64,000 nt of DNA from Kudoa neothunni (lineage: Eukaryota; Animalia; Cnidaria): positions 2,502,258 to 2,566,257 of the forward strand of contig OZ199839.1 in assembly GCA_964304625.1 (NCBI GenBank), given 5' to 3'. The notes beneath the pieces were generated by a model. It was not told the DNA's origin, did not search any database, and saw nothing but the letters and a program-made list of their open reading frames with translations. Both the position numbers and the translations under genes were made by a program. Shown here one piece after another: positions 9,601 to 63,200 of the stretch (position 1 is its first letter; each line of letters starts with the position of its first letter).

Positions 9601-11380
9601 CTCTTCTTCGACCAACTGGGTAATGTTTATGTTGAGTTTATTATTGGAAACAAAATTTTAGACCGGAAAATACCTCTAATACTCCTGGAAACGAAAACTG
9701 TATCAATGACTTTATTTCTTTATTTCAAACGTTTTAGTATCGAGGGCCAGCTCATTGCAGCGAAATGCTTCGAATGATAACTGCCTGAAAGCGCCAAAAA
9801 GACCTTCTTTCAGACCTAAAATTACAGATAATCCCACTCAGTCTGTTTTTAGTACTCCACCGCCTATTGCTTCAGATCCATTCGCAACCATCTCTCCTGT
9901 GTCCACCAAACCAGAAACATCTTTCATAACACAAGTGGTTTGTTTGTATTCTCTTTTATACATTGTCATAATTAATTAGAATGCCACGGGAAATTCAAAT
10001 GCCCCTAAACAGTATCTTTATTGAACTAATTTAAGTAATATAACGGGTTTTTAAATATAGGTTGGGAACGTACACTCCGCAAAGGCCTCAAGAAAATATT
10101 TCTACAACTTTTGATCCTTTTGGAATGTAATTTCATTTTCATAAATTTTAGTTGTATTTCAAATATTTTTAAGGTCGAAGAATCAATCACCACATCCCAA
10201 TCTAAATCAAACCACAGGGACTCCAAATAAACCAACTAAAATGGACACCCCGGTTCCTACATACAACAATCCATTCAAATTCTCTGAACCATCTCCAACA
10301 AACCAACCAAATAAAACAATTCAAAATTTTGGAGGGCTGAACAGTCAAACTGGAAAAAGTTTTCCAAATCCTGATGTTCTACAAAGTCAAACAAATCAAA
10401 ATAAGGGATTCTTCGGTAATCGCCCTTCTCAGCAGGACTTCCATAATTACGACGTCCCCAAAAGCCAAACCAACTCCACTACAGGATTCGCAAACAGTCA
10501 ACCTAGCCAAACCAACTCCACTACTGGATTCGTGAATAATCAACCTACTCAAAATTTCCCCAATTATAATACCCCCAAAAGTCAAACCAACTCCACTACT
10601 GGATTTGCAAACAGTCAACCTAGCCAAAATTTCCCTAATTATGACATCCCCAAAAGCCAAACCAACTCCACCACTGGATTCGTGAATAGTCAACCTACTC
10701 AAAATTTCCCCAATTATAATATCCCCAAAAGTCAAACCAACTCCACTATTGGATTCGTGAATAATCAACCTAGCCAAACCAGCTCCACTACCGGATTCGT
10801 GAATAGTCAACCGAGTCAAAATTTCCCTAATTATGACATCCCCAAAAGTCAAACCAACTCCACTACAGGATTCGCAAACAGTCAACCTAGCCAAACCAAC
10901 TCCACCACTGGATTCGTGAATAGTCAACCTAGCCAAACCAGCTCCACTACCGGATTCGTGAATAGTCAACCGAGTCAAAATTTCCCTAATTATGACATCC
11001 CCAAAAGTCAAACCAACTCCACTACAGGATTCGCAAACAGTCAACCTAGCCAAACCAACTCCACTACTGGATTCGTGAATAATCAACCTACTCAAAATTT
11101 CCCCAATTATAATATCCCCAATAGTCAAACCAACTCTACAACTGGATTCACAAAAAACCAAGCTAGCCAAAATTTTCCAGTTTACGACATCCCCAAAAGT
11201 CAAACAAATCCAAACCAGGGATTTTTCGGCGCGGGGACCAATCAAAGCCAACCCAATTATGATGTATTCGTAGGTCCAACAAATAAAAACTATGCTGCAA
11301 TGGGAAATAAATCTAATCAAAATATTCAAAATAATCAACCCCGTGACGCGTTAAAGGACCAAAGTAATTATAGTTATTAG
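6120..11380 (+). CDS. SCYL2: SCY1-like pseudokinase, SCYL2/CVAK104-like, multi-exon, with low-complexity repeat C-terminus
   Basis: Spliced N-terminus GDAISSLY..LWKIYQG..|KVGIFVLQK..ITPFTETK|DSYCFVSEPVIGTL..IYSLAKGLHHL..LTPCEILV..WKIGG..GYVSPE..DVFWLG, followed by HEAT-like helical exons and DPF/NPF motifs. Most introns are ~40-100 nt, with one of ~1.17 kb (6474-7641). Confidence 0.8.
6577..6615. repeat. (TG)n(TA)n microsatellite in SCYL2 intron 2
   Basis: tgtgtgtgtgtatatatatatatatatatatgtgtgt seen directly. Confidence 0.9.
10436..11210 (+). repeat. Coding tandem repeat built from 33-nt (NFPNYDIPKSQ) and 42-nt (TNSTTGF[AV]NSQPSQ) modules
   Basis: Near-identical nucleotide modules in irregular order within the last SCYL2 exon. 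Confidence 0.95.
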
Positions 11381-16264: not shown

Positions 16265-18280
16265 TTAATCAAAGAGTTGATTAATGATTTCTTTGTTGCA
16301 TTTGATTTGGTTGTCAACGGTTTTGTAAGCTTTTAGAAATGTGTTTTCAACCAAGTTTCCATCTCTAAGGTTGCCTACCAACTCATGGTACTCGTGGATC
16401 AGTTGGAGGTCCTCTTTGAGAATGGAAATTTTTTTCTCATGCTAAATAACTTTAGAGAAATATTTCAAGCTTAAGTTGGTTACATCTGGTTTACAATCTG
16501 GGAATATATCACATAAACGAGAGTGCATATCGTCGAGTCGTTTCATGTGAGTACTTACCATGGTGTTTAACGATGCGAATTTATCATCAAAACTGTTTCT
16601 TTTGATAGATTTCAACCGGTAAGAATCCACAATTGAAACCATCTCTCTTAACAATTCAAGTTGGATTGAGCATAAATCATCAAATTCCTGAAGATATTCA
16701 AGCAGATCATCGACTTTTCCTTTGTGGTTGTTATCCTTAAATAAAATAATTAAATTAAGATAGTAATATTTAATAATTACATGTGAGCTTAGAGCTTTGG
16801 TTCGTGAGACAATCGAAACGCTGAATAGCACAACAAAAAATATGAACGAAGCATAATATGGTTTGAATAGAAGAAACAATGAGTTGTAAGAGTACACGAT
16901 TTGTATTTTTGTCTCTTGTGCAGGTATCAAATTACGAGCTTCAATTCTAAGAGTGATTCTCCCTCGCATATCCATATAATAGTAGGTGTTGTATTTGGTG
17001 ACGTTGAAATCGATAGTTCGAGGAATATCAAAACTAACCACTTGAGCACCTTCTGGTAAAATAATTTCCAAAATAAAATTGTCAATCGATACAATATCTT
17101 GACACGCCCCCAACAAATTTATATTCAACTGACGTAGAGAATCAATTTGATTGGATTGTTTTTTGATGACTTTGGTTGCAGGTCGTTTATATTTGATGGT
17201 GAATTCGGTGTTCCAACCGCCCATCAATGGAAAACGTGGTGTAACATCCATTTGTAGAAAATTTCGCGTAGCAGACAGTGTACTTGTGGATATATTGCCA
17301 ACCATATCACGGTAGTAATAATTGTAAGAGTCTTTCGGTAATCGAAAGAGGACACTGTTGATTATGTGAGAAGTTTTCGATAGGCTCGAGTCGGCAATTC
17401 TATCGCGAGAAAATTCTCCAACCAATTTGTTCGCTTGATTGTGAATAATGTGCGATTCCACAAACTCCACATCGGCATACTCGGACACATAAACCTTCCT
17501 ATGTAACAGCGAGGTGGATGTGTAACGAACAGACGTTGAAAGATGGATCCAAAATGGAATGTTGCTGAAGGGAACTTGCTTGTTGTTGATAGAATATTTC
17601 AACTCGTTTCTATTAACAACTTCTGCGCTTTTCTGCGGGGTGTAAGAAATCAATTTGCCATCTTTCAATTTGTATGTTGTTGTTTGAACCTTCACTGGGT
17701 ATATCGATAACACATTGACTGAATCTTCAAATACATACATCGGCATCACTGTGAGTTCAAGTTCTAATGGATGTGTAATCAGTCGGTTGGTACATATCAC
17801 TGTGTACACAACAGCAACACTCTCTCCACTTCTCAATGGATTCAACAGTGAAACCTCATACACTTGATAGGAGTTGATGTCTTTGGTGTCTAGATTTTGG
17901 TTGGAGAGTTGTTGAAATTGAGATTTTTTTATAGTTTCTTTTGGTGCAACACCTTCTTTGTATGAAAAAACAGCTAGATGTTTGTAGTCGGTTTGATTCA
18001 ACATAAAATACACGTTTGTCTGTGTTTTTGCACCTGTGTTGCTATAGGTTATGCGAAATGTTGAAGTTACAAGGCTGTTTTCAAATAAAACCTCTTTCTC
18101 TGCCCCTATAATTTCTACTCCTTCGAGTACTGGAGCAATCTCTTTCATACTAATAGTGTGATCTGCTCCAGGAATAGCAGTGTAAATTGAGGGCACAAAA
18201 CACATAAAACATGCCAATAAAATCATGGAACGACTAGAATTTTCGTGTAGAAGCCATAGATTAATTGAAAACGGAACCAT
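16265..18280 (-). CDS. RPN1: Ribophorin I (oligosaccharyltransferase subunit 1)
   Basis: Signal peptide, YYYRDMVGNISTS, TPRFPLMGGWNTEF, IILPEGA, YYMDMRGR, a TM helix and a coiled cytosolic tail. Two short 3' introns (16736-16780 and ~16442-16483), last exon ending ...INQLFD*. Confidence 0.93.
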
Positions 18281-23653: not shown

Positions 23654-25861
23654 ATGCTTGCACGTATGTTGAATAGTAGAAATAGAGAAGATACTATATC
23701 ACCGCTTGTCGACTCGTCGACAACCACCAACAATCTCTGTTTACCAACCACTGCTACAACTTCCACTAGCAGTAACCCAACCACCAACAGTCTTATTCAT
23801 CATTCATCAAATGATAATACCACAACCGATCAGGATCAGGATCAAGACCAGGAACAGGATCAGGACCAAGATCAGCTAGATGATGAGGAAGATGGGGCGG
23901 ATAACTTCTCACCGCCATCAAATCCAACATACAAAATTGAATCCAACCCAATTTCGTCGTTTTCTCTATCCACTTGTGATATTGCCAGCTTTGGTAGTGA
24001 TTTTTTGAGTGGTGGACAATTCTCCAACCTCTATCAATCCAACCAGTCCACAGATAAATCCGATCTAACATTGATGGATTCATCTGTCAAAATGGCAGCT
24101 TTGAAATTGAAACACCTGGAAGAATTGTTAATGAATCTCACCAACTCCCAAATCAACCATCTTGAAGTCAATATCAATAACACTAATAATATTGGCGATG
24201 AAACTCAATTGGATTTGTTTCATCTCACAAAATCTATAGTTCAGAAAATGAACTCCGACTCACCCCATCTCACCAATCATGCTCTTTTCAATGTCGATAA
24301 TGGTCATTCGTTTTTGGATCGTGATAATTCTATCAATCCACTCCAAAATTACATTCCAAATAAGGCTGTCGAGAATTGTATGCAATCCCGAAATGTGGCA
24401 CCGATTTTATGTGAATACGTTGCCGCAAAAAGTCTCTTGTCGAAAAAGTTGAAATCATCCCTGGCCAATGTAAACGCTCTCAGAAATGTCCTGTTGAAAT
24501 TGGACTCTCCCAAAAATTGTATATCCATTCCTACCAATCAAAAAATGTTGTTTGGAAACAACTATTCTCGCTTGAAGAATTCTCCTCCTGTGAATGGTTC
24601 ACCCGCCAAACTCACCACCAACGGTTGTAGTGGTTCGTCGACTGTGAGCTCCAACTCCAACTTATCAAATGAACCGACAGAATCTGTCACAAATTTTCCA
24701 AATCGTTTAAGAATGTTTGATTGCAACAGAAAACATATTATTATGACATCACTCCCTCACCAGTGTATCAGAATGTTTAACAAACAAGCACATGTCAACT
24801 CTAGAAAAGCAGCATTCCAAAAAAGGACTCATATTAACGATATTCACATCTACAAATTGTTTGATCGAATCATTGAGGATGTGCCGAATGGTGTACCGTT
24901 CAAACCGATGCATCGTGCTCGAAAACGACGCTCATTTTCCCAACTTATTTGGATGGCTGATTTTAACGACTCCACTGTAAATAACACCAACACACAGCTT
25001 TCCAATCATAACAATTCCACAAATGGCGTTATTGGAATTGAATCGTCGTACAAAACCGAAGGCGCCACCCTTAGAGCCAGATCTTGTCGTCGTGACTACA
25101 GCTCACTTTTCGATTTGAGCTCCAATGATGATGATTATGTGGGTCGTGATGATCAACATATATTGGATGACTTCGATTCTGATTCTATATCTACTGCTAA
25201 TGATGGTCGTCGTCTTTCTATGTCCAACTCTCATATCAGGCGTCTACATCATTCTTCCGCCGTCACACATGGTCCTCGCAAAAGCTATCTCTCCAGATTG
25301 GATAGCTCCCTCAATTTGAACCACCACAAATCTAATATTTCCTCCCATCTGCTGGATAACAACTCCAAAAATGGATCACTAAACAAACAACCCCAACCCA
25401 AAAGTGTCTATGATTATGTGATCCTTCCCGCCGAACTCATGCCTGTTGTGCACATTGAACCAATTGTATATAAAGAGGTTGTCACTCCGATGTGGTACAC
25501 GGTTGATGATAGTCGAATGGATTGGCTGAAAAATTGTCTCAAAAATAAACCAACTCAACCTACCACCACAAATCCATCCACCCCTACTACCAATACCAAC
25601 AAAATCGATTCAGATACACTCACCGATGATGAACACTTCAATCAAATGCACATCCAGTATGAGAACGCTGAAAAAGAAAGACTCCTCGAGAAAGCTCGTC
25701 AAGAGAGTAACTCTTCCGACCCCAGTGTGACCGCTGTTGAGACGTCTGTACCAGCTTCAATAACAACCACCCCTACCGATATTGTTTCGTGTAACCTTTC
25801 GAAAAAAGTTGTAAGGTCTAGTAATGGCCGTTTTACCAAACTGTCCACTGGAGAAAATTAA
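23654..25861 (+). CDS. KANSL1: KAT8 regulatory NSL complex subunit 1-like (PEHE domain), single long exon
   Basis: 735-aa ORF. The C-terminal YDYVILPAELMPVVHIEPIVYKEVVTPMW...TDDEHFNQMHIQYENAEKER matches the recalled KANSL1/NSL1 pattern 'NIVIP..RVEKLQYKEILTPSW..DAAFAALHAKCEEMER'. Acidic (DQ)n tract near the N-terminus. Confidence 0.7.
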   Translation: MLARMLNSRNREDTISPLVDSSTTTNNLCLPTTATTSTSSNPTTNSLIHHSSNDNTTTDQDQDQDQEQDQDQDQLDDEEDGADNFSPPSNPTYKIESNPISSFSLSTCDIASFGSDFLSGGQFSNLYQSNQSTDKSDLTLMDSSVKMAALKLKHLEELLMNLTNSQINHLEVNINNTNNIGDETQLDLFHLTKSIVQKMNSDSPHLTNHALFNVDNGHSFLDRDNSINPLQNYIPNKAVENCMQSRNVAPILCEYVAAKSLLSKKLKSSLANVNALRNVLLKLDSPKNCISIPTNQKMLFGNNYSRLKNSPPVNGSPAKLTTNGCSGSSTVSSNSNLSNEPTESVTNFPNRLRMFDCNRKHIIMTSLPHQCIRMFNKQAHVNSRKAAFQKRTHINDIHIYKLFDRIIEDVPNGVPFKPMHRARKRRSFSQLIWMADFNDSTVNNTNTQLSNHNNSTNGVIGIESSYKTEGATLRARSCRRDYSSLFDLSSNDDDYVGRDDQHILDDFDSDSISTANDGRRLSMSNSHIRRLHHSSAVTHGPRKSYLSRLDSSLNLNHHKSNISSHLLDNNSKNGSLNKQPQPKSVYDYVILPAELMPVVHIEPIVYKEVVTPMWYTVDDSRMDWLKNCLKNKPTQPTTTNPSTPTTNTNKIDSDTLTDDEHFNQMHIQYENAEKERLLEKARQESNSSDPSVTAVETSVPASITTTPTDIVSCNLSKKVVRSSNGRFTKLSTGEN

Positions 25862-46326: not shown

Positions 46327-48699
46327 CCCATTCCGGGTCCAATATTTAAATTTCCTTAAAATTCAAAATATATGTTTACATAAATCTTTTAATAGCGAAA
46401 TTAAATTATTATTAATTAAAAATTAAATTTTAATAGGAAAATAACAAAATTACCTAAGGGCCGGAAAAGAAAACAAAACCCACCAACGTGATCTTCTAAT
46501 TGAACGTTTTGTTGCAGAATGCGCGAAAAATTAACTATTTTATATCGAGAACAGAGTAAACTACTACGGATTATGAAAATCTATCGGGTCCTTAACGAAT
46601 ATAATTTTGACAATTTTGACAAAAGTAGATAGTCTTCTTTGTATACACAACACATCTTCGTCTCTTTTTCTCAGCATTAGTACTCTTCATAGGCCGGCTA
46701 CACAAAGACGTAGCACGAATATTTTCGATGGATTGTTGACGGGTTTGTTTTTCAGAATTATTTATACTTGCCAAATTGGCTACGATATATCTAATGTGAT
46801 TTAATATTTAAAAAAGCTGATTTTTTGTTTGCTTCTGTAATTAAATATTCTCCATGAATTAACTGCTGCGAGCGAGATCATGTTAGTAAAAAGAGACCAA
46901 TAACATTTTTTCGAGCGAATTCTTGTTCTGTAGCAAGATACACAATTGTCTACGGTATCAACACCACCCGTATAGTTGTTGTACATATGACAAATTTGAG
47001 GCTGTTCGATCGATACATAGCGCTTTTTGGTTCTGCAGTAACGTTTCACATGTTGAATTGGTTCAACAATAAGCAAATTACTAACAAAAGTAACAGGGTT
47101 CGTATCATTCCGTTGAATACAGTTGATTTCAGTTATAGAATCTTTGAAATATTCATGGTAGCCTTGGTGGTTTTTATTCATTAATTTCGGAGTCGTCAAG
47201 GGACAGTTCGACGTTCGGTTCATCCTCACTGTTCCAGTAGCAATAACACCCCTTCTTTTCAATTCAACCAATAATTTGTAAGAGGTGGAGAAATTATCGA
47301 AATACACATGGAGCATACTTCTATCCTTTTGCTCGTCGACAAAATTTAACACGATGCTTCCACCTAGGCCAAAATTCTTGTTGTAGATTTTTGTCTTACT
47401 TGTATATACACTAAAACTGTACACATATCCTTCAGAAGACTCCAAAACCCACTGCTTGAAACCGAAACGGACGGGGTTACCTTTCATATACATTTTGCGG
47501 GAGTGGTGGTCCGTATATGGAACCATCTGTTCATCAGCAGACAAGTTGTCGTGGAAATATCCAAATTTGTTGAAATTTTATAAAATTTCTGATTTATTGG
47601 ACTTTTCTTGAAAAATTTATCGTCTTTATCGAGTCTTGAATTATTATTGAAGTGGAGGTGTCGTTTTATCAACTTGAATCTTTGATAGATCATAGACTTT
47701 TTACAATTTCAACCCCAGAATCCATTGTAGTTTCCCAATACGTATGTTTCTGAGATAATCGATTGTAACCGATAATAATAAAATACCAATAAAAGATTAA
47801 GTTCTTTTACAGTTAAATGAAACGTGTGATCATTCTTTTGTCGTGCATAAATATTTTATTTCTTTAACAATATGTAAGAGCAAATTTTCATCCAAAAATT
47901 ATAGGAATGTTTCGTAGGATTCACATCTAGTGGCTGAATCATCGCGTATAATAATAATATATTTATTTTGAGAAACTGTTTGGCATTCAGTGGCAATTTC
48001 AGATGAATCATTAGATTGAGATATTTCACACCATGTAGCACAAACATTATCATTAAATGATTAATTTTCAACATATGAGAAAGTTTCTATTATACCTCAT
48101 ATTTCTGGGACGGTTCAAATGCCAGTGTCGTCACAATCTCTTGAAACGAAGGGACCTTCTTCATCAATCAATACATCAAAATTATCTGGAGGTAACGTCA
48201 CAAAATCAATTGGGTTCAGAATATCATCGTCATTTTCATTATCATAGACGGTATCAATTAAATTTTTGTACCTTATTATAACGTTGTAAGCACAAGGTCA
48301 AGTAAGAGATTAATTGGAATTTAGCACGTCAATGGGTTTTCGTTCTCTTTTAGGCACCGCGCTGTATTTTTTATATTTGTTACCCGCAATGACGATTCGA
48401 TCTAATTTAAAATTATATCATTTATCTAATCTTTCGGAATTATAACTTAGCTTAGAAACTCTAAATTAGCCATTTTTACGAAGTTACTGTCCTATTTTCT
48501 ACCCCAGTATACCATAATTACTATATAATACGTAATCTCAAAAGATATAAATTCATCATTAGATTTTAATCTTTAATTACATTCCTAATGGATAAATACG
48601 TGATATATATTTTGAAATAATATTCATCGACGAATTATTACAATTTCTTAGAGAGGCAACAATGAGGAGCCGAAAAGGGGAACGAAATCCCGGAATGGG
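46327..48699 (-). mobile_element. piggyBac transposon with both termini and a frameshifted PGBD-type transposase
   Basis: TTAA|CCCATTCCGGG...CCCGGAATGGG|TTAA. Motifs DEQMVPY, KGNPVRFGFKQW, YFDNFSTS, ATGTVR, YNNYTGGVDTVD, RHLHF and a C-terminal RRRCVV..FCQNC Cys-rich domain, spread over several frames. Confidence 0.95.
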
Positions 48700-49776: not shown

Positions 49777-50245
49777 CTTATTGCCGGGGACAGATAACAC
49801 ATCAGTGTGACACTCGGACTCAGAACCCTGAGGTAATGGGTTAGAATCCGCTGGTAGTCAGTCTACTGCTTCCGTGTAGGTGGGTCTCTATCCCATATTT
49901 TAGAGTTGTGGTTAAAGTGTACTAAGCTAGCTTGTGGAGTGGTGTGGTGTGCACTAGCAGCCAAATTCGCGTGAATGGGAGTTTGAATCTCCGGAATCCA
50001 AAGAAAGGAAAGTAATTGCAGCCCTCACAGAGCCATCGTCCTTAAAAGGATAGTGTTTGGAGTGGTGGTCGCCCCGAGACGAGGATGTTTAGTGGTTTAA
50101 AGTCCCACACTACTGCATAAAGATAAGGGAGGAGGTTTCATGCTACGTCCTACGGTGCCTAAAGCGTTAATGGAAGAGGTCTGACCAAACAGAATTCCAC
50201 AACCTAATAAGTTGCGCCAGGAGTTTTACCTTGAAAACAAAAAAA
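49777..50245 (+). mobile_element. tRNA-derived SINE with A-rich tail and 9-bp TSD
   Basis: Flanked by ATAATGTGT (49768-76 and 50246-54). Absent from the paralogous site at ~56307. GC-rich, with head GCCGGGGA..GGGTTAGAATCC (B-box-like) and 3' GAAAACAAAAAAA. Confidence 0.85.
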
Positions 50246-50397
50246 ATAATGTGTAATGCATCAAAGATTTTCTGAAGAAATAATAATTCATATCAACTAA
50301 CGAAAAAACGAATTAAACTAATTTAACGTGAACGTGAACGTAAAGTAATTATGTTAGTATGATATGGTTAAACGAGATCGGATAGCTGTGGGGTGCC

Positions 50398-51428
50398 CTA
50401 CTCATCCAAAAGAGGAAACGGAGGGTCTATAGAGCGAACGTACGACCAAAACATTGCTAGGTGTAAATTCGCGTCTCTATGATTAAATTATTAAATTTTC
50501 TTAAAACAAAATAAAGCTCACTCTTTTCTCGAAAGAGAATCTGTATGGTTGTTAAATTTGAAATATTGCAAGAAATTAGTGGAACATATACCGGCGGTAT
50601 TGCAGTAGACTGAGTAATCATTCTCCATATGTCTTGACCTATACTCATTGGCGATTTTTCTAGCTTGTAACTTACACTAAATAAAAATATGGTTGGTAAT
50701 ATTCTATTAATCAGTTACATTTATTCTTTTTATAAGATCCTGGTTCTTTTCCTCGCAATAAAACAGCATCACATTTCTTGCAACATTTTCTGTCGGAAAT
50801 AAGATGTGGTTAATTTTTCCAAAGTACTTAATATATATCTATAAATATGGAGAACAAATTTTTTTTACTGCACATAAAACACAATTCATCTCGTATTCGT
50901 TCAGGTTGACTAAAAAATTAACCATGGTAAAATGGATACAGTTGTTAAATATAAATATTCAATTTTTAATAAGTAAGAGGAATGTCTCTCATTAATTGAA
51001 TATGTTTAAAAATTCATAATAACTTGAGTCATAGAAACATTTTCTCTGACCTTCACAATACTCTCTGTGAATTGTAGACATGTTAACCAACGTCTCAATC
51101 GTAACATTTATTAATGATATACGACGACTCTAAAGAATTTTAATGAAAATATTTCAACTATTGTACTACATCTAGTCTATATTTCATTTGACTACGCGAT
51201 ACCATGGCTTGAGTACGATCTATGAGTATGTTTTTTGTTTCATCGCCGAGGCGACGGTAATTAGGAGGAGGAAACTAAAAATTCTCAACTTTAATAAAAA
51301 ATATTATGAACTTACAACAAAATGTGAAACAGATTCATTTGATTGAAAGTTAACGCCAATCACCCCTAAACCTTTTAAATGCTGTTAACACAAGGAAATA
51401 TACAGAAAAAGATAAAAATTGCAATCAT
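50398..51428 (-). CDS. Novel secreted 8-Cys protein, copy A (8 exons)
   Basis: Spliced: MIAIFIFFCIFP|WVIGVNFQSNESVSHFV|FPPPNYRRLGDETKNILIDRTQAMVSRSQMKYRLDV|SRRISLINVTIETLVNMSTIHREYCEGQRKCFYDS|INLNEYEMNCVLCA|YFGKINHILFPTENVARNVMLFYCEEKNQDLIKRIN|CKLQARKIANEYRSRHMENDYSVYCNTAGICSTNFLQYFKF..|DANLHLAMFWSYVRSIDPPFPLLDE*. Intron positions and phases are shared with copies B and C. Confidence 0.8.
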
Positions 51429-52851
51429 CTCCAACTATTTGTTATTTCTACCGGGGAGTTGCGACCCTATTGTATTTAAAGTGATTTATCTTATGTATTT
51501 GTATTGAATAATAATTTTTTTTATCTAAATCATATTTTAAATTACAGTGTAACTTAATTCTGAGGTTATTTTGAAGCATGGATCCGTGACTTTGGTTCCC
51601 AGTTACGTTTCATACGTGAAAAAATAAATTGATGTTAGTTCAGCAGGTTATTTAACTTAGGAATATTTTTTCATATTATACATTTAAACGTGTCAAAACT
51701 CGCAGAAAACTCAAATATTAGTATATTCTCATTGTTAAATCAATTAACTTCATTCTTTATCAATTCTGAATAAAACGTTATTTTAGTTATCAAAAACACA
51801 AATTTCGTCACAGTTTTTGTAGAATAAAAGTATGATTAATTTAATCTCTATGGTTTAACTGCAGAAAAATCGCCAAATTTATCGATTAAAGATTATAGGA
51901 AGCCTCATTATCGACCCATAAATGGTAACCTTAGGTTCCACATGCCTAATGCTATACTTTATCTGTTAATCCTACCTTGTTAAATTAGACTAGTTTGACG
52001 CTCCAATTTAACAATTTATGGTAGGAATGATAGCTCTTCATCGATCAAGTTATTTTAGATAATAATGGGTTAAAAATTTTACACGATAAATCAGTTAATG
52101 TTTGTATATAATATGAAATTTTTATATTTTAGATAGGGAATTATAAAAACCAAGCGTTTAAGATAGGTTGCTACAAACCTACAAGATCGTAGTTGCTCCA
52201 TTCAAATTTTAATGTATTAAATGATGTTATACCCTATCGATTCATTGGTATGATCAGTTGAAATAATTACGAGGTGCTGGGTCAAATATAATAGATGACA
52301 ACAACTATTATACATATAACATTGAATGAAGATTGTAAACTATTGATGATGCAACACTGATAAATACAACAAAATTAAATAATCCGTATGGTAAGTTTTT
52401 ATCGTTGTTCCTGATCTAGGTTACGGTAATTATTCAGCAATTTAACCTATTTATTATTTTTTAGTCTCATAAAAATTATTCTTCACGCACGTAACTCATT
52501 TAATATTGATTTACCACTCAGCTGAAGACTAAAGTATATTCTTTTTAATACATTTTTGACAACTATCGTAAATATTAATAAAATTATAATTTACTTTTAT
52601 TTAGAAATTTATTATTACATTAATATCAAGTCAATTAGTAAGTAAATATTAAGTATCGTTACCTACAAAATTTTTCTAAAAGAAAGCATTAACGTATTTA
52701 TTATTTATAAAATTATTTTAAAAAGCCAAATTTTTTAATCTCATATAATAAAAATTTATTCCCATATTCCTATCAAAGCGTGAATAAAAGTTCAAATATT
52801 CATTCAACGAATATAAAGGATACTACATCTATTAATTATATATTTAATTAA

Positions 52852-53545
52852 CCTTTCGACAGTTTCCGGGACCAAATTGACCCCTGAGCCTATTGTATTA
52901 CAAGTTTTCCATATAAAAAGTATTTCACAATAGTCATATCTAATTTATTCTCTTTAAAAATATAATATTTTATAATTAATTAATTAATAATAATTGGAAA
53001 CAATAGAATAAGCAACGATATAAAGACCTACAATAAATTTGATGCTTTTGGGGTCAATTTGAACCCAGGGTTTTTATTGCTTGAAGTGATAATGAAATAT
53101 TTAATTAGATGAATTTTATGGACAGAATACAGTGAAAATAAGGAAAACATGTATACGAGATCATACTTGATGGCAGAGATGCATCTGTTTTATCACGCCG
53201 TTACCACGAGTGACCCCAAATATGCCGACAAGAGTCTAAGGAAGACTACGATGAGTTTTTTTACATTGACTCTAATAGCGATGCTAACAAGATATTTTAT
53301 GTCAGTCATTCTAGCTATGGAAACTCAAGTTCTGATGGATTTGATGATAATGATGAGTATTTGAATGTGTTTTGCGAGTTTCCTTGGGTTAAGCTATGGC
53401 CCGCGGGTTCGAACCCCGCCTACGACAACTAATTAAATCGATATACAATAATTCTCTTTGTAAGCTTATCCTTTAACATCAACAAACTATATTTTTAATT
53501 TGTAAATAAATTGATCTTTATTATTTTATGGATCAATTTAACCCT
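52852..53545 (+). mobile_element. Possible piggyBac-like left end with acidic N-terminal transposase remnant
   Basis: TTAA|CCTTTCG start, recurring GGG(A/T)CAA(A/T)TTGA(A)CCC motif (~52867, 53050, 53530), and a D/E/S-rich open stretch at 53150-53360. Confidence 0.3.
53403..53427 (+). other. tRNA-like 3' fragment (T-arm plus acceptor 3' strand), not a complete tRNA
   Basis: GCGGG-TTCGAAC-CCCGC perfect T-stem/loop followed by CTACGAC-A. No complementary 5' acceptor strand or D-arm is visible upstream. Confidence 0.55.
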
Positions 53546-54399
53546 TTTAACTAAAACTAGCGGAAAAATCTATCCTCCAGGGGGCTCGGGTGAAAAACAC
53601 CACTGACTTTTTTTGTTTAAAGTTATTCAAAAAATAATTTTGAATTTATTCGAGAATGTTTAATAGATTCTATCGATAAAATTTGGAGCATATTTACATC
53701 TATTACAAAATTTAATCTGACTAGACCCAATCATTGTGGACTATATTCAACGAATGATAAGGCCTTGCGTTAAGTAGTGTAAAAAACTAGTTATTATCTA
53801 ATTCACCTGCCAGAACGGTCCAACTAGTCCAAGCTTCTTGCTCAAATAATCCCATTTTTCTACATAACCCAAATTGGCGCACAATCAAAATATAATATCC
53901 TAGGAAGTATTCTACAACATTACAATTCAAAAATAAACTTTTTTGTTGTTAAAACTTGATATATCTAACAAAATCGATGTTTCTCTATCCATCTAATAGG
54001 AAAACCTCAATATTATACCACCGGAAATTTTTGAGCGGTAGACGAATAATGCCGCATTGGATTTGGTGGGATACTAATTGCAGATTCTCTTGTTTATAAT
54101 TTTTCAAGTTAATACAAGCAAAAGAACCATGAGGTGTTTTTCATCCTAAGTCCGTTATAGGATAGAATTTTTTTGGGCATGCTCTAAACTTATTTTTTAG
54201 CCAAGTTTTTGATACGCGATGCGTTTAATCATTCTAGGAGAATATTGTAAATTTCCATTTACCATGATAAGGTTGTAAAATTTTATGCCCTCATTAAACG
54301 TGATTTGGAATGCAATAAACCCAAAACCCATTAGAGGGCTAAAAACATAATTATTAATAAGATAATTAAAAAATTTATTTAAAGTTATGAGCTAGTATA

Positions 54400-54790
54400 T
54401 TTCTATAAAACTTACTTTTTTGATTAAAGAAAATGAATAATATTGTCAATTTCGATAAAATTATAGAAACAGCCATTAAATTTTTAATTAAATTTTTGGG
54501 GGATACTCTACGAACTGCTTCCTTTACGGAAGAATTATTGGATAAAAATTCAGGTTTAAGTTTTTCGAAACTTTTACAGACGCCACAAATAATAACGATG
54601 TGAAACATTTAATGAAAAAATCAAAATCAAGATTATCTTGATATTTAGAAATCGACCTAAAATTTCGGATTTTTCAGCCATACACATCGTCCAAATGAAA
54701 AATACAACATCATACATTAGAAGTATTTGGTAACTTTTTAGACGCATTAATAGCGAATTTTTAAATAACGTTAAGAATAAATACCAACAG
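54400..54790 (-). pseudogene. Possible MULE transposase remnant
   Basis: Minus strand FAINASKKLPNTSNV*CCIFHL/..CVWLKNPKF resembles the MULE 'AxNA....P...GCxFHLxQxxWRK' region. Confidence 0.35.
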
Positions 54791-55135
54791 GGTAAATTAA
54801 TACGCATGCGTGCGCACATGTGAAAGTTTTTGTCATATCTTAGTTGATATCAGGTGGCGCCTGGGAGTATCTTTAGAACGGACCCTACCGAATCTTCCGC
54901 AAAGCTTTTATTGCAGCATCTATGGTTTGGGTCATCTCCTTTCTTTATCGTCCTTTCTTACAACTCGTGTTTATTCTATGTGTCAGCAGCCACCAAATTG
55001 CGTATCCTATATGCTTGATCTTGAGGTAAATATTAGATGAAAACATATAAAATAATGGATCGGTCGTACGTAATCCCGACCCCGGTAGCATTAGTACGTA
55101 CGTCTGCGCATGCGCGAGAAATATTTAAAACAGTT

Positions 55136-55318
55136 CAGTGATTCCCAACTAAAACTGGACTCGCACCCCCATTTTTAGACATTCGAAATTCACTTCCCCT
55201 TTTGCACACAATAAGGTGTAACTGACTTAAAATTTATCATAAATTATTTTCAATTTTGATCGGATCTCGCGCCACCTGAGACCAAAGCTCGAAACCCCCT
55301 GAGATGCGGGCACTCCTG
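55136..55318 (+). mobile_element. Short hAT-type MITE (MITE-B), copy 2
   Basis: CAGTGATTCCCAACTAAAACTGGACTCGCA... closely similar to 26286-26456. Confidence 0.6.
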
Positions 55319-56452
55319 ACTTAAACAAAAAATCTGGCTACAACTTAAATATTACTGAAAACCCGATATTTTTTTTATTTAAAAATACTATTTAAAATTG
55401 AAAAAATATCCAAAACAGAAGAAGATATTAACTCCCGCTTCTTTAAAGCCATGCTCTTTAATATTGTTGCTAAACTCTTCTAAATAAAATAACGCTGTCT
55501 TTGAAATGTTCATTGTTTTATTAATAAAATCATCTTACGTTTCTGATTCTTGGGGGAGAGGATGTCATTGCGACATTGTTACTATCATGAATTAGGGGGG
55601 ACGTCACTATAAACCACATTACTACATTTCTACAACATGTGTCTAGGTTTATCCTCCGTTTCATAACTTTTTGTCACATTGATGTAATTATAAAAATTAA
55701 CCAATTGTCTAACTTTGGTAGAAAAATGGAAAAACGCTTAATTTAATCATGTGGTCAAAGCAAAAAAAAGGTACGTACGACCGGTCCACTATTGTATGCG
55801 TTACACATATTTAGAAATTTGGCTTTTTAAAATCATTAAATTAAATAGGTACCCGTGTCAAGTCTTCAAAAATTCTACAAGTACAAATTACTCTTTATTT
55901 AAAACGGCATCAATGCAACGTTACTCACGCCTATGTGGGAGTTTTACTAAGTCCGGCCTTGGCCTAACAGGAAATTATGTGTCCCCAAAGCACACTAAAT
56001 AATAAATATTGATATTATATTTTTGGTTATATGATAGATTTTCTCACGAATTTTTCGAAAATAATTTTTAATCCCAGGCACTTGGTATTTATGAGGGTTA
56101 ACTTTCGATCCGGTTCAAGAAGTTTATGCAGCATTCATCTTTGTAAAAATTTCACTTACTCTCATTGAAAACTATATTCACACTGACGAATCCATTATAC
56201 ATCAGATTAATTTTTTCCAGAAATTTGGATAAAGTTTGATACAATTTAGCAATAAAGGGATAGAATAAGACCTACATGAATAAACTTGACTGAAATCGAC
56301 TATTCATAATGTGTCATGCATCAAAGTTTTGCTGAAGAAATTTTTAATGCGCCAAAATTCATGAAAAAACGAATTAAACTAATTTAATACGAATGTAAAA
56401 TAATTATAATAGTGTGATAGGGTTAAATGAGATAGATTAGCTGTGAAGTGCT

Positions 56453-57488
56453 CTACTCATCTGAAGTAGCCCACGGATTATTAATAACTATATCCCGAGA
56501 CTGAAACAACGTTGTTTGTAAATTAATATCTCTATGTTGATATTATTAATTTTTTGAGGCGAAAATAAAACTCACCCTATACACGAAGGAGAATCTGGCT
56601 CATCGATAAATTCGAAGTATTGCAAGAAATTGGTGGGACACGCAAGGGCGGTATAGCAGTAGACCAAGTAATCATTCTCTACGCGCCTTGATCTATAACT
56701 ATTTGCGATTTTTCTAGCATTTATCCTACACTAAATAAAATTTTGAGTAATAATATTCTATTAACCAATTACATATATTCTTTGTAGAAAGTCACGGTAT
56801 CTTTCTCCACAATAAAACAACATCACATTTCTTGCAGCATTTTCATTTCGAAATATGATTTGGTTAATTTTTCCAAAATACTTAATATATATATAAATAT
56901 ATAAATGAGGAATAAAAAAATCTGTTACTGCACACAAAACACAATTCATCTCGTATTCGATCAACTTTACTAAAAAATAAATCATATTAAATAAGGATAC
57001 AGTTATCAAATACAAACATTTAATTTGAAATATATAAAAATAATTTTTCTCATTAATGAAATGTATTATAAAAATTCATAACTTTTGCCATCGAAACACT
57101 TGCTACGACCTTCACAATACTCTCTACGAATTGTGGAGACGTTGGCTAACGTCTCAATCGTAATATTTATTAATGATAAACGACGACTCTAAAGAATTTT
57201 AACGAAAATATTTCAACTATTGTACTACATCTAGTCTATATTTCATTCGACTACGCGATATCATGGCTTGAGTACGGTTGATGAGTATATTTTTTGTTTC
57301 TTCGCTCAGACGATTGTAACTGGGAGGTGGAAACTAGAAAATCTCACTTTTAAGAATCACAGATATAAATTTACAGGAAAATCTGAAAAAGCTACATTTA
57401 AATTAAGATTAATGTGAATGGCCCCTAAATGACATATAACGTTGTTAACACAATGAAATGTACAGACAAAAATAAAAATTAGGATCAT
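56453..57488 (-). CDS. Novel secreted 8-Cys protein, copy B (8 exons)
   Basis: MILIFIFVCTFH|WAIHINLNLNVAFSDFP|FPPPSYNRLSEETKNILINRTQAMISRSRMKYRLDV|SRRLSLINITIETLANVSTIRREYCEGRSKCFDGK|IKLIEYEMNCVLCA|YFGKINQIIFRNENAARNVMLFYCGERYRDFLQRIY|CRINARKIANSYRSRRVENDYLVYCYTALACPTNFLQYFEFIDEPDSPSCIG|DINLQTTLFQSRDIVINNPWATSDE*. Confidence 0.8.
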
Positions 57489-59171
57489 CACCAATTATTT
57501 TTCTCTTTCTACTGCGGAGTCGCAACTGTATTGTATTTATATGTAAGTTATCTTATTTATTTATTGGATAATAATTTTTTTATCTATATCTTGATTTAGA
57601 TTGCAGTGTAAATTTAATTCTAAGGTTATTTCGAAGCAAGCATCCGTGACTATGATGTCCGATTACGATTCATACGTGAATAAATAAACTAATGTTAGTT
57701 AAACAGATTATTCTAATAAAAGGTTCTTCTTGCATAGTATTCATTTGAACATGTTAACACTCATAGAAAATTAAAATATCAATATCGTATTCACATTATT
57801 AATTCAATTATCTTTATCCTCCATCAATTCCGAATAAAATGTTATTTCAATTTTCAAAAGTACTAATTTCATAAATATGTTAGACAATAAAGTGTTATTA
57901 ATTTAATCACAATGGTTAGACTGCAAAACAATGGCAGATTTTGCCGATTAAAAATTATTATTGACAACTCTAGCATTAACCCATGTACGATAACCTTGGG
58001 CTCCACGAGTCCGATGCTATACTACAAGGATTAATCCTACCGTATTAAATTAGACTAGTATGACGCTTTGATCGAACAATTTATGGTAGGATTGATAACA
58101 TTTCACTTAATTAATTATTTTATGTAGTCGTAGGTTAAAAATTATCTACAATTAAACAACTAATGATTGTAAAAAATATGGAATTCTTATTCTTGTAGAT
58201 AAGGAATTAATAATAGCCAATCGATAACGATGGATTGCTGCAATACAAAAAAATCATAACCACGCTCATATTTTAAGATAAATAAAAGGATGCTTTACTT
58301 GATCGATTAATTGGTATGGTCTGTTGAAAATATACGAGTGGTTAGGAGTCAAATATAATCGATTATAACAACTATTATTGATAACAAATAGAATGTCGAT
58401 TGTAAACTATTGCTGATGCAACACTGATAAATACAAAAAAAATAAATAATCAAGAGGGTCGGTTTTTATCGTTTTCGCAGATTTTTATTACGACTACTTT
58501 TCTGCAGTTCAACTTATTTTTTTTAGTTAGCCTTAGAAAATCCATTTACCACGTATGTAACTCAATGAAGTATTGATCTATCACTTACTCGGCTGAAAAC
58601 TACGGAATATTCATTTTAATGTATTGTAGGCGATTATCGGATATAATCATAGAATTCAAATTTACAATTACACATAAATGCTTGTTATATTCACATCAAA
58701 TTAATTAATTAATTTGTAAATCTTTAGGTACCAATACCTACGAAATTATTCTAACTGAAAGATCCCGCACAACATAATTCCATTGAATAATATATTATTC
58801 TATGAATATATTATTTTTTGTAACACTGGAAGTTTAAAAAGATCGAACTTCTACATTAATTCAAAAATTTTGTGCTGGGTTGATCAATATAATTATTTTA
58901 TTTTTTATTCTGAGCAATTACACTTTAATAACATATCCATTTCAGGTCGAATTAATATTCAGATTTGAGTTTTTGAACTTCAATGAAACTTAATGTAAAT
59001 TAACGAGGGAACCACAGATTATGACCTATATTATTTCTGTTAACAGATCATTGGAATCAATGCTCGTTATATTAGTGTACCATACAAAAAATACTTGTAG
59101 AAGAAATAACGATATAACGGACGAAAATTTATTTAGTATAGTCTAGTTTCAAAGTAAAGTAATTATTGTAG

Positions 59172-60243
59172 TTAGGTGGGATTGTTTAACTGTGGGGTGC
59201 CTGTCCCACCAAAATCAACCCACGGATAATTGATTGGTTGAACTCGCGATCCAAACAACGCTGGCTGTAAAGCATGACCCCTATTGTTAATTTATAACAA
59301 TTTAGGAGAAAAATATTTAACAAACTTACCCCAAACTTGGAGATGAATCTAGTTGGTTTCTAAATTCCACAAATGGTAGGAAATCAGCAGGGCATACGTA
59401 GGAAGCACCACAGTAGAGTGTGTAATCATTCTCCCTGTTTATTCGAGCATGCCTATGTGCGGCAGTTCTACAGTCATAATAACACTAAATAAATTTAAGA
59501 GTAGTAATATTACGTTAGACGGTTACCATTATGCTTTCTATAAGGTTTTGAGCATTTTCTTCGCAATAGAACATCATCACACTCCTTCCAACATCTTCAC
59601 GATGAAAGAAGAATTTCCTAACTTGTCCAAATATCTAAATATACATTTAGATCTGAATAGAACAAAGATTCTTACGGCACACTCAACACATTTTAACTCT
59701 TGTTCGGTCAAGTTGACTAAACAAATAGTCAGTCACATTAAATTAGGATATTTTATTAAATACATATAACAATTTAAAATAATTAAAACGAATAGATCTC
59801 ATAATTAAATTTTTTATCAAGAGTGGAATCATACCAACCTTTGTTATTGACGCAATTGCTACGACCTTCACAGTAATCCCTGCGAATAGCGGTGTCGTTC
59901 GCGAATCCTTCAATCGTAAAATTTAATATTGATATATTTTGACTCTACAAAATTTAATTAGTTCATTTTAGTTATTCTACTATAACTAATCGCAATATTA
60001 TTCCGTCGCGAACTAAAGCATTTCGGGTGCGGTTAATCAGTATATTTATTGAGTCCTCAGTGAGACGGTTATAACTTCTAGTTGGACGCTAAAAATTCTA
60101 TAATTCGCCAACTAAATTCAAAAACATACAGCAAAATCTGAAACAGCTCCACTCAATTGCAAGTTAGTGTGAATAGCCCCTAAATATCTTAAAGCATTAT
60201 TAACACAATGGAATATACAACAAAAAACAAATATAGCTATCAT
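59172..60243 (-). CDS. Novel secreted 8-Cys protein, copy C (237 aa). Exons 60243-60207, 60179-60130, 60088-59981, 59944-59839, 59716-59676, 59634-59527, 59484-59330, 59280-59172
   Basis: All seven introns are GT-AG and the spliced 714-nt CDS is open: MIAIFVFCCIFHWAIHTNLQ..SYNRLTEDSINILINRT..RRDYCEGRSNC..LKCVECA..VMMFYCEE..CYYDC..ENDYTLYCGASYVCPADFL..GTPQLNNPT*. Confidence 0.82.
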
Positions 60244-63200
60244 CTTCGTCTATTCGTTAATTCTATTCGAGAGTTGCAGCTATAAAATATTTATAGTTTA
60301 ATTTATCTAATGTTTACATTGAATTATAACTTTTTAATCTATATCTTAATATAAATTACAGTTAGTTTAATTTCGAGGGTGTTTCAAAGAAGTGGTTCGT
60401 GATTTTTGGCGCCGACTAAGATTGCTTACGTGACCTAATAAGATGAATTAAATTCAACAAATTTACCATAGTAAAAGGCACATTTTTATTTCAATATCCT
60501 TTAAACTTAACATTTTCATTAACTGAAAATTCAAATAATTTTATATACGAAACATGAATTTAATTTATTCGCTATAAATTCAAAAAGATTAATTAATTAT
60601 TCACAAATTTAGATTAAATAAAATCATTCGGGAATAAAAAATTTAATAATAATTTTAAATAATAATGATTAAGAATGGATACATTGATTATTCATATATC
60701 TAATAAATGATAGTTTATTTTGAAATAATCCTTAATTTAGTCACAGTTAATTTTCTTTTTAGGACAAAATTCTGTGTAGACTAATTAAAGAGAAGTTAAC
60801 AATTTTAAAGTGTTTTTATGCTCGCATTATCCAGTTAATACGCACGCAAATGAATCAGGTGGCAATTAATCTCTAAGTTGAATACTAGGTGATATTCCAT
60901 ATAATATATTATTGAACAATCATGAAAATATTAATAACATTTAACTGTATGTTCTCATTATTAGAAATCTGAATTGAAAAATAATTAGATTCTAATTATT
61001 TAAGTAAAATTATTAAAATTTTTCTCATAGAAGGGATCCATATGACAAGATTCCAAATAATTATATGTATATACTAATGAGTTGGTTGGTTTTGGGAATT
61101 CAAGTTTCTTCAAGATCATAGAATATTTTGTAACGAATCTATTGATGAAACTTTAAATTGATTTTTATCACTGCATGAATAAATATCCAATATTCTATTA
61201 TGGAATAATAACGATAATATATCTAATTATATTACTTAATTATGAAAGTAGCGCGAAGTTTCTAAATCAAGTTTAATATCTCAATTAATATACAGAAAAA
61301 AAAGAAGATAAGTTCACTCATACCAGAAATTTATTTTATTGAATTTTAAAAGGTGAATGATGTTAATTGTAATTTACGCAATATAATTTAATACTTTTAT
61401 TTAGGTCGTTAAAATTAATATTTTTCTCATTATAGATATATATTTTATATTTACAAAATATTACATTGCCAGTATCAAAATAATATTGCATCTATTGAAA
61501 TAAACTTACGGCTTGATTTAATAAGGTAATGGGAATTGGTTAGAACAGCGTCAGTCATGGTGGTCGCTATGGTTTATTTCTCGAGATATTATAATTACCT
61601 TTCATTTATCATTAGAATTTCCGTTGTACGAAAATTAACTAAGATGGTTCTCTAGTTTATTAATTAATATATTATTTGACGTTTTTAGTATCGTTTACAA
61701 TTCTACTTACATTAGAGTGTACAATTTTATAGTAATCCGTTATTTATTCACAGGGTTTTAATTAAATTTCAGATACAGTAACTACTATATTAACGAGGAA
61801 ACTGAAATTTTAGGAAGACATGAATGCCATGGAATTATCCCTTTGTAGTAGAGTAAGTTTATAATCAAGCCATCAATTTAGCTTTTTTTATTTTGTAAGA
61901 AATTTAATTTTTTCAATTGATGTGAATCATTCAATGATTAACTATTTGTTTATTTAGATATAAATTTCACTCGTAGTAAACAAAAAAATTATGAACTAAG
62001 GGACGACAGTTGACAGTTGTTACACCATTATTCATTTCATTTCATTTATTTATAATCAATTATATTTTTAAATATATTCAAATAGATTTAATTAGATAAT
62101 TACTTTCACTATAATTAATTGATTCCTCATCTGAATTTCTATTGATTCATTCATTTTAAATTAAACATTTCTTTTTTGTGACTGTAATTATGTATTAATT
62201 TACATATAAAAATATTTTTTCATGATTAAAATGTAGTAGTAGTTTATATAAAATGAAAATATATGATATTTTTATCATATTATATTTAGAGATGTTGTTT
62301 ATTTGTTTAAATTTTCATTTTCAATTTACTGGTTTTACCTTTTATAGTAAATAATGAATAAAAGTCAATAATTCTATCTTTAAAATTGAATTATATACTT
62401 AAGTAGATTTTTATACTTTAAATTAAAGTTGCGCCTAAAGCTACCACTTAGAGCGCATCCATACATCACTCTGTTTATTTTAAACACAAACTAAAGTTAT
62501 TTAGAAACTACGGTAACTCTACATATTGATCTATTGTTTTATTATTACTGACGTTATTTTTCATTTTGAAGGCTCATTTTATTAATTCAACGAATTTACC
62601 GTAAAAAATATATTTTTTAATCTAGCAATTATGACCAAATTCGATATATAAATTATTTTATCGAATTTTTATTCCATATTTGAATCGTAATGTTAAAAAT
62701 ATATTGTTAAGTTATATTTCAGTATGTCAAATGCCACAATAAGGTTATTGATTTATTAACAATTTATCGAGAACCTATTTATTACTCTGAGAGAAATAAA
62801 AGAAATAAATAGTCGGTAATAAATTTTTAGATAAAGACCACACAACAAAAAACAAGTAAAAATTCTTAAGAAATGGAGGGCCTAAAATGGGAATGAATAT
62901 ATTATTTGGAGTTACCTTGAGGTAATAAATTTTAATTATAAATGCGACGAGTTATCACGCAAACCAATGCTGTTTTAAGAATAGAAAGAAAATGCGTGTA
63001 TAACTTATAAATTTGATTAATAATTGTGGTTTAAAACATTATAACCTATATGGGCTAAAAAATGTTACCGATTATAATTAATTCTTTTACAATTATTAAA
63101 AGCTTATTTTATAAATTTAAAAAATTTTATCAAGGAAAATTGCGAAGAAAACTTAACCGTTCGGTTATTAATCTCTGGTAATTTGAATCTATGAGGTTAA

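Follow-up and report, generated by a model that had tools for sequence, protein, structure and literature searches.

Three minus-strand genes of Kudoa neothunni, termed A, B, and C, are, judging from their sequences, functional members of a multigene family that encodes putative secreted proteins with a framework of eight cysteines. The eight-cysteine family is previously undescribed, and no account of it was found in the literature on Kudoa cysteine-rich proteins or myxozoan saposins. The genes lie in a window of 64,000 nucleotides (the whole stretch of contig OZ199839.1 that was analysed, from whose first base positions are numbered); the whole window falls within one of two adjacent, nearly identical 72-kb copies (C2:2.43-2.574 Mb), which may be a true duplication or a retained haplotig. 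The tandem family described in the initial annotation is real but is not confined to the triplet, since an exon-7-based search of the genome recovered 18 loci, comprising 14 distinct sequences, on three contigs.

Gene models and selection

Each of the three genes comprises eight coding exons, with GT..AG at every splice site and no internal stop codon. Gene A (59172-60243, minus strand, 233 aa) starts with an ATG at 60243 and has exons at 60243-60219, 60179-60130, 60088-59981, 59944-59839, 59716-59676, 59634-59527, 59484-59330, and 59280-59172. Gene B (56453-57488, minus strand, 223 aa) has exons at 57488-57464, 57424-57375, 57333-57226, 57188-57083, 56969-56929, 56880-56773, 56730-56576, and 56531-56453. 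Gene C (50398-51428, minus strand, 223 aa), whose stop codon ends at 50398, has exons at 51428-51404, 51365-51316, 51274-51167, 51129-51024, 50909-50869, 50826-50719, 50676-50522, and 50476-50398. The exon lengths of gene A are 25, 50, 108, 106, 41, 108, 155, and 109 nt; those of genes B and C are the same except for a last exon of 79 nt, and the exon phases are identical among the three genes. Introns measure 36-49 nt, with the exception of intron 4 (113-122 nt), in which no conserved open candidate for a micro-exon was found among 12 paralogues. The published genome-wide medians are 112 bp for exons and 49 bp for introns (PMC12239612), and the agreement of the models with these values is counted in their favour.

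The first intron is located 25 nt after the ATG, in phase 1, and splits a Trp codon (T|GG). It occupies 60180-60218 in gene A (39 nt, with a counterpart in the paralogues), 57425-57463 in gene B (39 nt), and 51366-51403 in gene C (38 nt), all on the minus strand; its length is 38-46 nt in most paralogues and 36 nt in the atypical locus L028. As many of these lengths are not divisible by three, splicing of intron 1 is required. When it is retained in gene C, the frame ends at codon 18 and becomes open only after removal of the 38 nt, and the intron is likewise needed for an open frame in the paralogues L020 (40 nt), L025 (38 nt), and L029 (39 nt, holding an in-frame stop). A seven-exon model in which gene C is a frameshifted pseudogene was dropped because the conserved 38-46-nt intron after the ATG restores the frame. 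The bounds, strand, shared phases, and open spliced frames given in the initial annotation were thus reproduced, as were its eight exons and three intact copies (once the 38-39-nt intron 1 is spliced) and its maximum exon length of 155 nt, while the 237 aa assigned to copy C were not borne out.

It might be argued that the three copies have lost their function and are decaying, and that their frames are still open only because they were duplicated recently, given that the identity of exons (0.63-0.77) is not above that of introns (0.66-0.79) and that the genes are surrounded by repeats. However, the frames are open across a nucleotide divergence of 23-35% among the copies, for which P under neutral drift is 0.0002 or less; in 5,000 neutral simulations at the B-C divergence, the frame stayed open in only 0.02% of runs. 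In addition, exons 3-7 align free of indels whereas the introns show 12-28 gapped positions, pairwise dN/dS ranges from 0.40 to 0.57 with second codon positions changed least, and exon lengths and phases are retained by eight further paralogues at only 25-40% amino acid identity, as are the cysteine framework and the promoter module in paralogues of this divergence. Decay is therefore regarded as very improbable. The dN/dS values point to relaxed purifying selection on these coding sequences and argue against positive selection; they are below 1 and do not bear out the earlier description of the family as diversifying. Three RNA runs yielded zero reads on the window, and the DNA contigs of a further data set gave only fragments, which counts as no test of expression. 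Parasite RNA reads were also reported to be too few in the genome paper (PMC12239612).

Promoter module and genomic setting

A common module, composed of an AGATAA box and a TATA-type box, precedes the genes on the minus strand. In gene A (60288-60308) AGATAA is separated by 7 nt from TATAAATA, at -65/-52 from the ATG; the composite motif is matched just twice within the window, once here. In gene B (57534-57553) the spacing to TATAAATA is 6 nt, at -65/-53, and gene C (51473-51492) carries the variant TTTAAATA, also after 6 nt, at -64/-52. Among 13 paralogues inspected, most keep the module at a constant spacing from the ATG; eight have two clear boxes and the others near-variants. Genome-wide, family promoters account for seven of 43 matches to the module and for three of the four strict ones; the fourth strict match (C2:7235120) is followed by no family gene. 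GATA-finger genes occur in the genome, and the common promoter suggests that the family may be co-regulated by a GATA factor.

Growth of the family by tandem duplication is supported. The spacer between B and C (52600-56050) has been enlarged by about 3.4 kb by dispersed repeats of at least three families, as indicated by genome matches of its segments 52830-53378, 53554-54343, and 55323-55789 (each with many matches, at 70-83% identity; 351 first-look candidates). A remnant of a piggyBac-type transposase is also found near the genes, and the earlier picture of tandem duplication in a transposon-rich region holds.

With regard to relatives elsewhere, exon 7 of gene A (59330-59484, minus strand, 155 nt), which begins at the sixth cysteine and includes DYxxYC-x5-C, served as the query for all family searches. 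An exon-7 profile found no relatives among 1.84 billion representative proteins; its sole match, P0001, was spurious, being the translation of a four-fold repeat in which only RDYSSWC-x5-C was aligned. Exon 7 likewise gave no usable match in the ESM Atlas. That the family would be lineage-specific, as initially proposed, is unproven and rests on one blank exon-7 profile search.

Protein architecture and comparison with saposin-like proteins

The modelled family members encode proteins of about 200-235 aa in three parts. Straight after the Met there is a short signal-type hydrophobic stretch (mean Kyte-Doolittle hydropathy 2.5-4.0), which is seen in all modelled members. It is followed by about 75 aa rich in N-glycosylation sequons with a YC-x5-C pair at the end, and then by a further 75 aa or so with the cysteines arranged as C-x2-C, x23-24, C, x11-12, C, x23, C-x5-C. 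After the last cysteine, a conserved segment (DFLKYxxF) and one further exon add about 45 residues. As first noted, A, B, and C share the motifs YCEGxxxC, CVxCA, FYC, C, and ENDYxxYCx5C, and the eight cysteine columns are kept in 12-13 of 13 paralogues; the signal-like N-terminus and the sequons were recovered as well, the latter numbering 3-5 NxS/T per copy in A, B, and C and 2-6 per protein in the modelled members. According to hydropathy in 11 full models, the proteins lack both a membrane span and a hydrophobic C-terminus resembling a GPI signal (in the mature part, most 19-residue means stay under 1.5, the maximum being 1.78 in L020), so that, on hydropathy, the proteins have the features of classical secreted proteins. 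They probably enter the secretory pathway and become glycosylated, and we infer that they adopt a largely helical fold stapled by disulfides. Although two similar YC-x5-C motifs occur, one per half, an internal duplication of the halves was rejected, as hhalign aligned just the 11-column motif with a probability of 0.7%.

The saposin-like (SAPLIP) superfamily, represented in Pfam by SapB_1 (PF05184) and SapB_2 (PF03489), includes amoebapores, NK-lysin, caenopores, and saposins A-D. In saposins, NK-lysin, and amoebapores, the cysteines follow the spacing C-x2/3-C ... C-x9-12-C ... C-x5-C within about 75-80 residues, and the C-x5-C stretch of canonical members, with its invariant x5, lies in a hydrophobic helix. 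SAPLIPs form a compact bundle of 4-5 amphipathic helices that binds lipids or membranes, and their cysteines pair as 1-6, 2-5, and 3-4, which in the numbering of the Kudoa family would be Cys3-Cys8, Cys4-Cys7, and Cys5-Cys6. The last six cysteines of the Kudoa family, spanning about 73 residues, agree with the SAPLIP spacing in 12-13 of 13 paralogues. Further likenesses are the signal-like peptide, predicted helices where SAPLIP helices 1-3 would fall, and the organization in multigene arrays, which SAPLIPs also form in parasites and nematodes. On the other hand, the family has an extra N-terminal region of about 75 aa, predicted to be glycosylated, with a fourth cysteine pair, and continues for some 45 residues beyond the last cysteine, unlike minimal SAPLIPs. 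Its C-x5-C stretch is polar, with Gly, Pro, Asp, and Asn, and the spacing is not invariant (x4 in L023 and L029, two of 14 sequences).

Domain, atlas, and structure searches were run with single exons, and joined sequences were used only for frame, dN/dS, and alignments. Pfam searches exon by exon (exons of at least 20 aa and 14 exon-7 sequences; hmmscan E up to 10) returned only noise and no SapB. A six-frame genome search with PF05184 and PF03489 left the family loci unmatched. Both results are weak negatives, the domain being split over three exons; among the weak SapB matches elsewhere in the genome, the one inspected (L011) was not a saposin. Exon-6 and exon-7 profiles against PDB sequences retrieved no saposin and only noise (IL-12, T-cell receptor, and myosin). 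AlphaFold predicted helices at residues 2-9 and 15-35 for exon 6 alone (pLDDT 71) and, at low confidence (pLDDT 57), a helix at 2-15 followed by a coil including C-x5-C for exon 7 alone; helical hydrophobic moments were mixed. SAPLIP membership is thus unproven, because the SapB models are unmatched and the C-x5-C loops are unlike those of saposins. The initial statement that no known domain is recognizable agrees with the blank exon-wise Pfam and PDB searches, as does the absence of any confident match to a well-known family, but it may be too strong, as the last six cysteines are spaced like those of saposins.

Two other cysteine-rich systems were compared. An array at C2:6.42 Mb of the same genome also consists of short-exon, secreted-looking genes and has similar intron placement (a C-x2-C at an exon end and a later exon that is Cys-first and C-x5-C-last), whereas it has six cysteines rather than eight; its exons lack Pfam matches, and no relation to the A/B/C family was detected (exon HMMs E > 0.03; hhalign probability 0.05%). 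The VSP-like proteins of Sphaerospora molnari are likewise parasite-specific, cysteine-rich, multicopy, and equipped with a signal peptide, but their ectodomains measure 300-700 aa, contain numerous CXC/CXXC motifs, and are tethered by a transmembrane segment (bioRxiv 10.64898/2026.02.11.705288), while the Kudoa proteins, at about 220 aa, are anchorless and have a constant framework of eight cysteines.

Proposed role and significance

The reading preferred here, with a probability of about 0.45, is that the family consists of secreted, lipid- or membrane-binding SAPLIP-like proteins at the parasite-host interface, duplicated under relaxed purifying selection; a lipid- or membrane-binding mechanism is preferred on account of the SAPLIP-type cysteine spacing. 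Once secreted, glycosylated, and folded as a disulfide-stapled, mainly helical domain, the proteins would bind lipid or membrane at this interface and could draw lipids out of host membranes or disturb those membranes, or else act likewise in vesicles of the parasite. Tandem and segmental duplication, with purifying selection relaxed, would account for the many paralogues, and a GATA factor may co-regulate them through the common promoter. The initial annotation put forward host-interaction effectors, toxins, and spore or capsule wall proteins as candidate roles.

It is also possible, if doubtful, that this real secreted family has a new, non-saposin fold and that its members are not lipid binders, serving instead in the spore valve, the polar-capsule matrix, or the plasmodial coat, or as ligands of host proteins. 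The absence of SapB HMM and PDB matches, the polar C-x5-C loops of varying length, the similar YC-x5-C motif in either half, and the DFLKYxxF segment with its additional exon all accord with a new fold, whereas the spacing and span of the last six cysteines closely match SAPLIPs and the predicted helices sit where SAPLIP helices 1-3 would. A related proposal, judged unlikely, is that of a myxozoan invention, in which a new disulfide-stapled helical fold, or an unrecognizably diverged saposin fold, was joined to a glycosylated N-terminal module and would be deployed as a GATA-driven set by the intracellular plasmodium for handling or breaching host muscle-cell membranes. Classical saposins are lysosomal cofactors, and a signal peptide together with glycosylation sites would be equally compatible with proteins that are retained within the parasite, whether in the ER or in secretory or lysosome-like vesicles, and that assist lipid hydrolases as saposins do, with a housekeeping rather than host-directed function; however, 18 fast-evolving loci in arrays are unusual for such a cofactor and the six-frame genome searches gave no canonical SapB signal, which makes this distinctly improbable.

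Myxozoan genomes are annotated almost wholly from protein hints, and fast-evolving families with tiny exons are therefore missed. The annotation of the Kudoa neothunni genome was made without usable RNA (PMC12239612). Its predicted proteome comprises only some 5,300 proteins, to which the family contributes at least 14 distinct predicted secreted ones, and the precise gene models and promoter module now given are directly testable. Kudoa neothunni is a parasite of tuna muscle, and members of its genus spoil fish, tuna included, while some cause food-borne illness; secreted proteins of the parasite-host interface are therefore natural diagnostic candidates, as well as candidates for understanding plasmodial life within muscle fibres. 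Under the saposin-like reading, a superfamily of membrane-active proteins would gain a new and strongly diverged branch, found in a cnidarian parasite; under that of a myxozoan invention, several such groups of proteins would have expanded in parallel, this family among them, and would together form much of the parasite's unannotated secretome.

Gene models and extent of the family

Three paralogous units, with 81% mean column identity in their alignment, were recognised on the minus strand of 50000-60600, each of which carries an intact eight-exon gene, namely A (60243-59172, 233 aa), B (57488-56453, 223 aa), and C (51428-50398, 223 aa). The exons of A measure 25, 50, 108, 106, 41, 108, 155, and 109 nt, and those of B and C are of the same lengths apart from a last exon of 79 nt; the phases are identical in all three genes, and GT..AG is found at every intron. 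A seven-exon model, in which A and B are open but C meets a stop at codon 18, its first exon being 113 nt instead of 114 nt long, was rejected and replaced. Several diverged paralogues show a frame break at the same place as C under that model, and this shared break uncovered a conserved intron 25 nt after the ATG. Intron 1 (GTA...TTTAG, phase 1, 38-46 nt in most paralogues) splits a Trp codon between T and GG, and in several members, where it measures 38, 40, 41, or 46 nt, the frame stays open only when it is spliced out. No micro-exon was found in the long intron 4. Once intron 1 is spliced out, the three intact eight-exon copies described in the initial annotation are recovered, together with their outer bounds (60243 in A to 50398 in C), the longest exon of 155 nt, and the named cysteine motifs, whereas the 237 aa reported there for copy C was not borne out.

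The genome searched comprises 40.26 Mb in four contigs, one of which, C2 (12,040,071 bases), contains the window at 2502258-2566257, whose overall G+C content is approximately 30%. The published K. neothunni assembly totals 40.2 Mb (N50 12.0 Mb), and its annotation (median exon 112 bp, median intron 49 bp) relied solely on protein hints, the number of mapped RNA reads having been too small (PMC12239612). The search for further paralogues proposed in the initial annotation, which used exon 7 (155 nt, starting at a Cys and carrying C-x5-C) and then profiles derived from it, yielded 18 loci genome-wide; a larger profile returned the same 18 loci and one marginal match (E = 0.04). These are three loci at C2:2.35-2.38 Mb, two triplets at C2:2.48 and 2.55 Mb, pairs at C1:5.46 Mb and C1:16.68 Mb, single loci at C2:1.68 Mb, C2:6.78 Mb, and C3:0.60 Mb, and an inverted, near-identical pair 68 kb apart (L026, C1:15750873-15751022, minus strand; L027, C1:15819022-15819171, plus strand), whose modelled coding parts are identical. 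For eleven distinct members an intact gene of eight exons could be modelled, with exon lengths that hardly change, and amino-acid identity among modelled members goes down to 25-40%. The eight Cys columns are present in 12-13 of the 13 aligned paralogues and are the most conserved of all positions.

Genomic neighbourhood and the tandem duplicate

The spacing is 2.75 kb between A and B and 6.06 kb between B and C, the latter being wider because it holds about 3.4 kb of dispersed repeats of at least three families. This spacer is filled by three such families (52830-53378, 53554-54343, and 55323-55789), which match dozens of genomic sites at 70-83% identity. A tRNA-like T-arm piece, GGTTCGAACCC, adjoins one dispersed repeat at about 53400-53440, and ARAGORN called no tRNA within the window. 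A piggyBac-type transposase remnant is located on the minus strand at 46801-47544, where a 247-aa ORF matches the C-terminal two thirds of DDE_Tnp_1_7 (E 6e-37). Other long ORFs include an intronless one of 612 aa (16442-18280, minus strand) with a full-length Ribophorin I match (E 1.5e-77), the family genes having seven introns, and two on the plus strand with no significant Pfam match (23654-25861, 735 aa; 10241-11380, 379 aa).

The window also belongs to a tandem duplicate of about 72.1 kb with 99.6-99.9% identity, the second unit of which comprises the whole window and a further 7.9 kb, to C2:2574140, and the first unit, its twin, occupies C2:2430304-2502057. A and C are identical to their twins over the whole gene, and B differs from its twin only in intron 3. 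Since haplotypic duplication is mentioned for the K. neothunni genome (PMC12239612), the 72.1-kb twin may be a retained haplotig; it could also be a very recent segmental duplication.

Protein features and the question of saposin-like relatives

In each of the 11 full models, 8-12 strongly hydrophobic residues come after the initial Met, 2-6 NxS/T sequons are present, and a hydrophobic C-terminal tail is lacking. No clear membrane span was found in the mature part of these models, where hydropathy averaged over 19 residues stays for the most part under 1.5 and peaks at 1.78 at one locus (L020). The N-terminal half consists of the signal and then about 75 aa with sequons up to YC-x5-C, and the C-terminal half follows the order C-x2-C, x23-24, C, x11-12, C, x23, C-x5-C; beyond this, a DFLKYxxF segment is conserved and the last exon varies. 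An NLT sequon stands directly before C-x2-C in A and in the majority of the diverged paralogues, but not in B and C. An internal repeat was considered and rejected, the two halves having no detectable repeat relation.

Saposins, NK-lysin, and amoebapores share the six-cysteine spacing and span of the saposin-like protein (SAPLIP) superfamily. The last six cysteines of the family match this spacing as well as the span, with about 73 residues. AlphaFold predicted helices at 2-9 and 15-35 for exon 6 alone (pLDDT 71) and a helix at 2-15, at the start, for exon 7 alone, so that these single-exon fragment models agree with a helical saposin-spaced region. On the other hand, Gly and Pro occur in the polar C-x5-C stretch, whose spacing is x4 in two members and which was modelled in the exon 7 fragment as a low-confidence coil, and genome searches with the SAPLIP models SapB_1 and SapB_2 did not match the family loci. 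With regard to other relatives, no exon matched Pfam when searched exon by exon, a PDB sequence search with exon 6 and exon 7 profiles returned noise only, nothing was found for exon 7 in the ESM Atlas, and the exon-7 profile had no real relative among 1.84 billion representative proteins, the sole match being a repeat protein judged spurious. The probability that the family consists of saposin-like lipid- or membrane-binding proteins is put at a little under one half, and a new fold with another extracellular role is considered nearly as probable. Another short-exon gene array (L039/L040, C2:6419298-6435753, minus strand) resembles the family in intron placement relative to the cysteines, one exon ending at C-x2-C and a later exon opening with Cys and ending C-x5-C-S; however, exon HMMs, Pfam, and profile-profile comparison gave no link to the eight-cysteine family or SapB, and the common layout is a lead rather than evidence.

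Selection and a shared promoter module

Three RNA runs bearing the same species label placed no reads on the stretch, an outcome that counts neither for nor against transcription. Exons 3-7 (518 nt) align among the three genes without a single indel, compared with 12-28 gapped positions in the introns, and second codon positions change least. Pairwise dN/dS values (Nei-Gojobori), the ratio that the initial annotation had suggested examining site by site, are below 1, at 0.40-0.57 (0.53 for A-B, 0.57 for A-C, and 0.40 for B-C), with dS near saturation for the pairs with A. Exon identity is not above intron identity, which is attributed to fast protein evolution and to 40-nt AT-rich introns that are mostly splice signal. 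When the B coding sequence was mutated with intron base composition in 5,000 neutral simulation runs, the frame was still open in 0.02% of runs at B-C divergence and in none at A-B divergence; that the three genes are pseudogenes is judged very improbable.

Most of the 13 paralogues inspected have an upstream module in which (T)GATAAGATAA is followed, after 5-7 nt, by TATAAATA. The distance from the TATA box to the ATG is roughly 45-66 nt, and most commonly about 53 nt. Eight of the 13 have clear versions of both boxes, and the rest have near-variants of one box, such as TTTAAATA in copy C. In the window, the tandem GATA motif and TATA box lie on the minus strand at 60288-60308, 57534-57553, and 51473-51492, with counterparts at nine paralogue loci. 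Genome-wide, the loose motif is not commoner than its reversed control (43 vs 66 matches); family promoters account for 7 of the 43 loose and 3 of the 4 strict matches, and the fourth strict match has no family gene downstream. GATA-finger genes are present at C1:10090017-10090343 and C1:6253134. That the module is maintained at a fixed distance from the ATG among paralogues whose proteins are just 25-40% identical also speaks for function, and it suggests that the family genes are co-regulated through a shared GATA-TATA module. As read from the genome sequence, this is a real, undescribed, and fast-evolving family of predicted secreted eight-cysteine glycoproteins, in which gene architecture and promoter are conserved.
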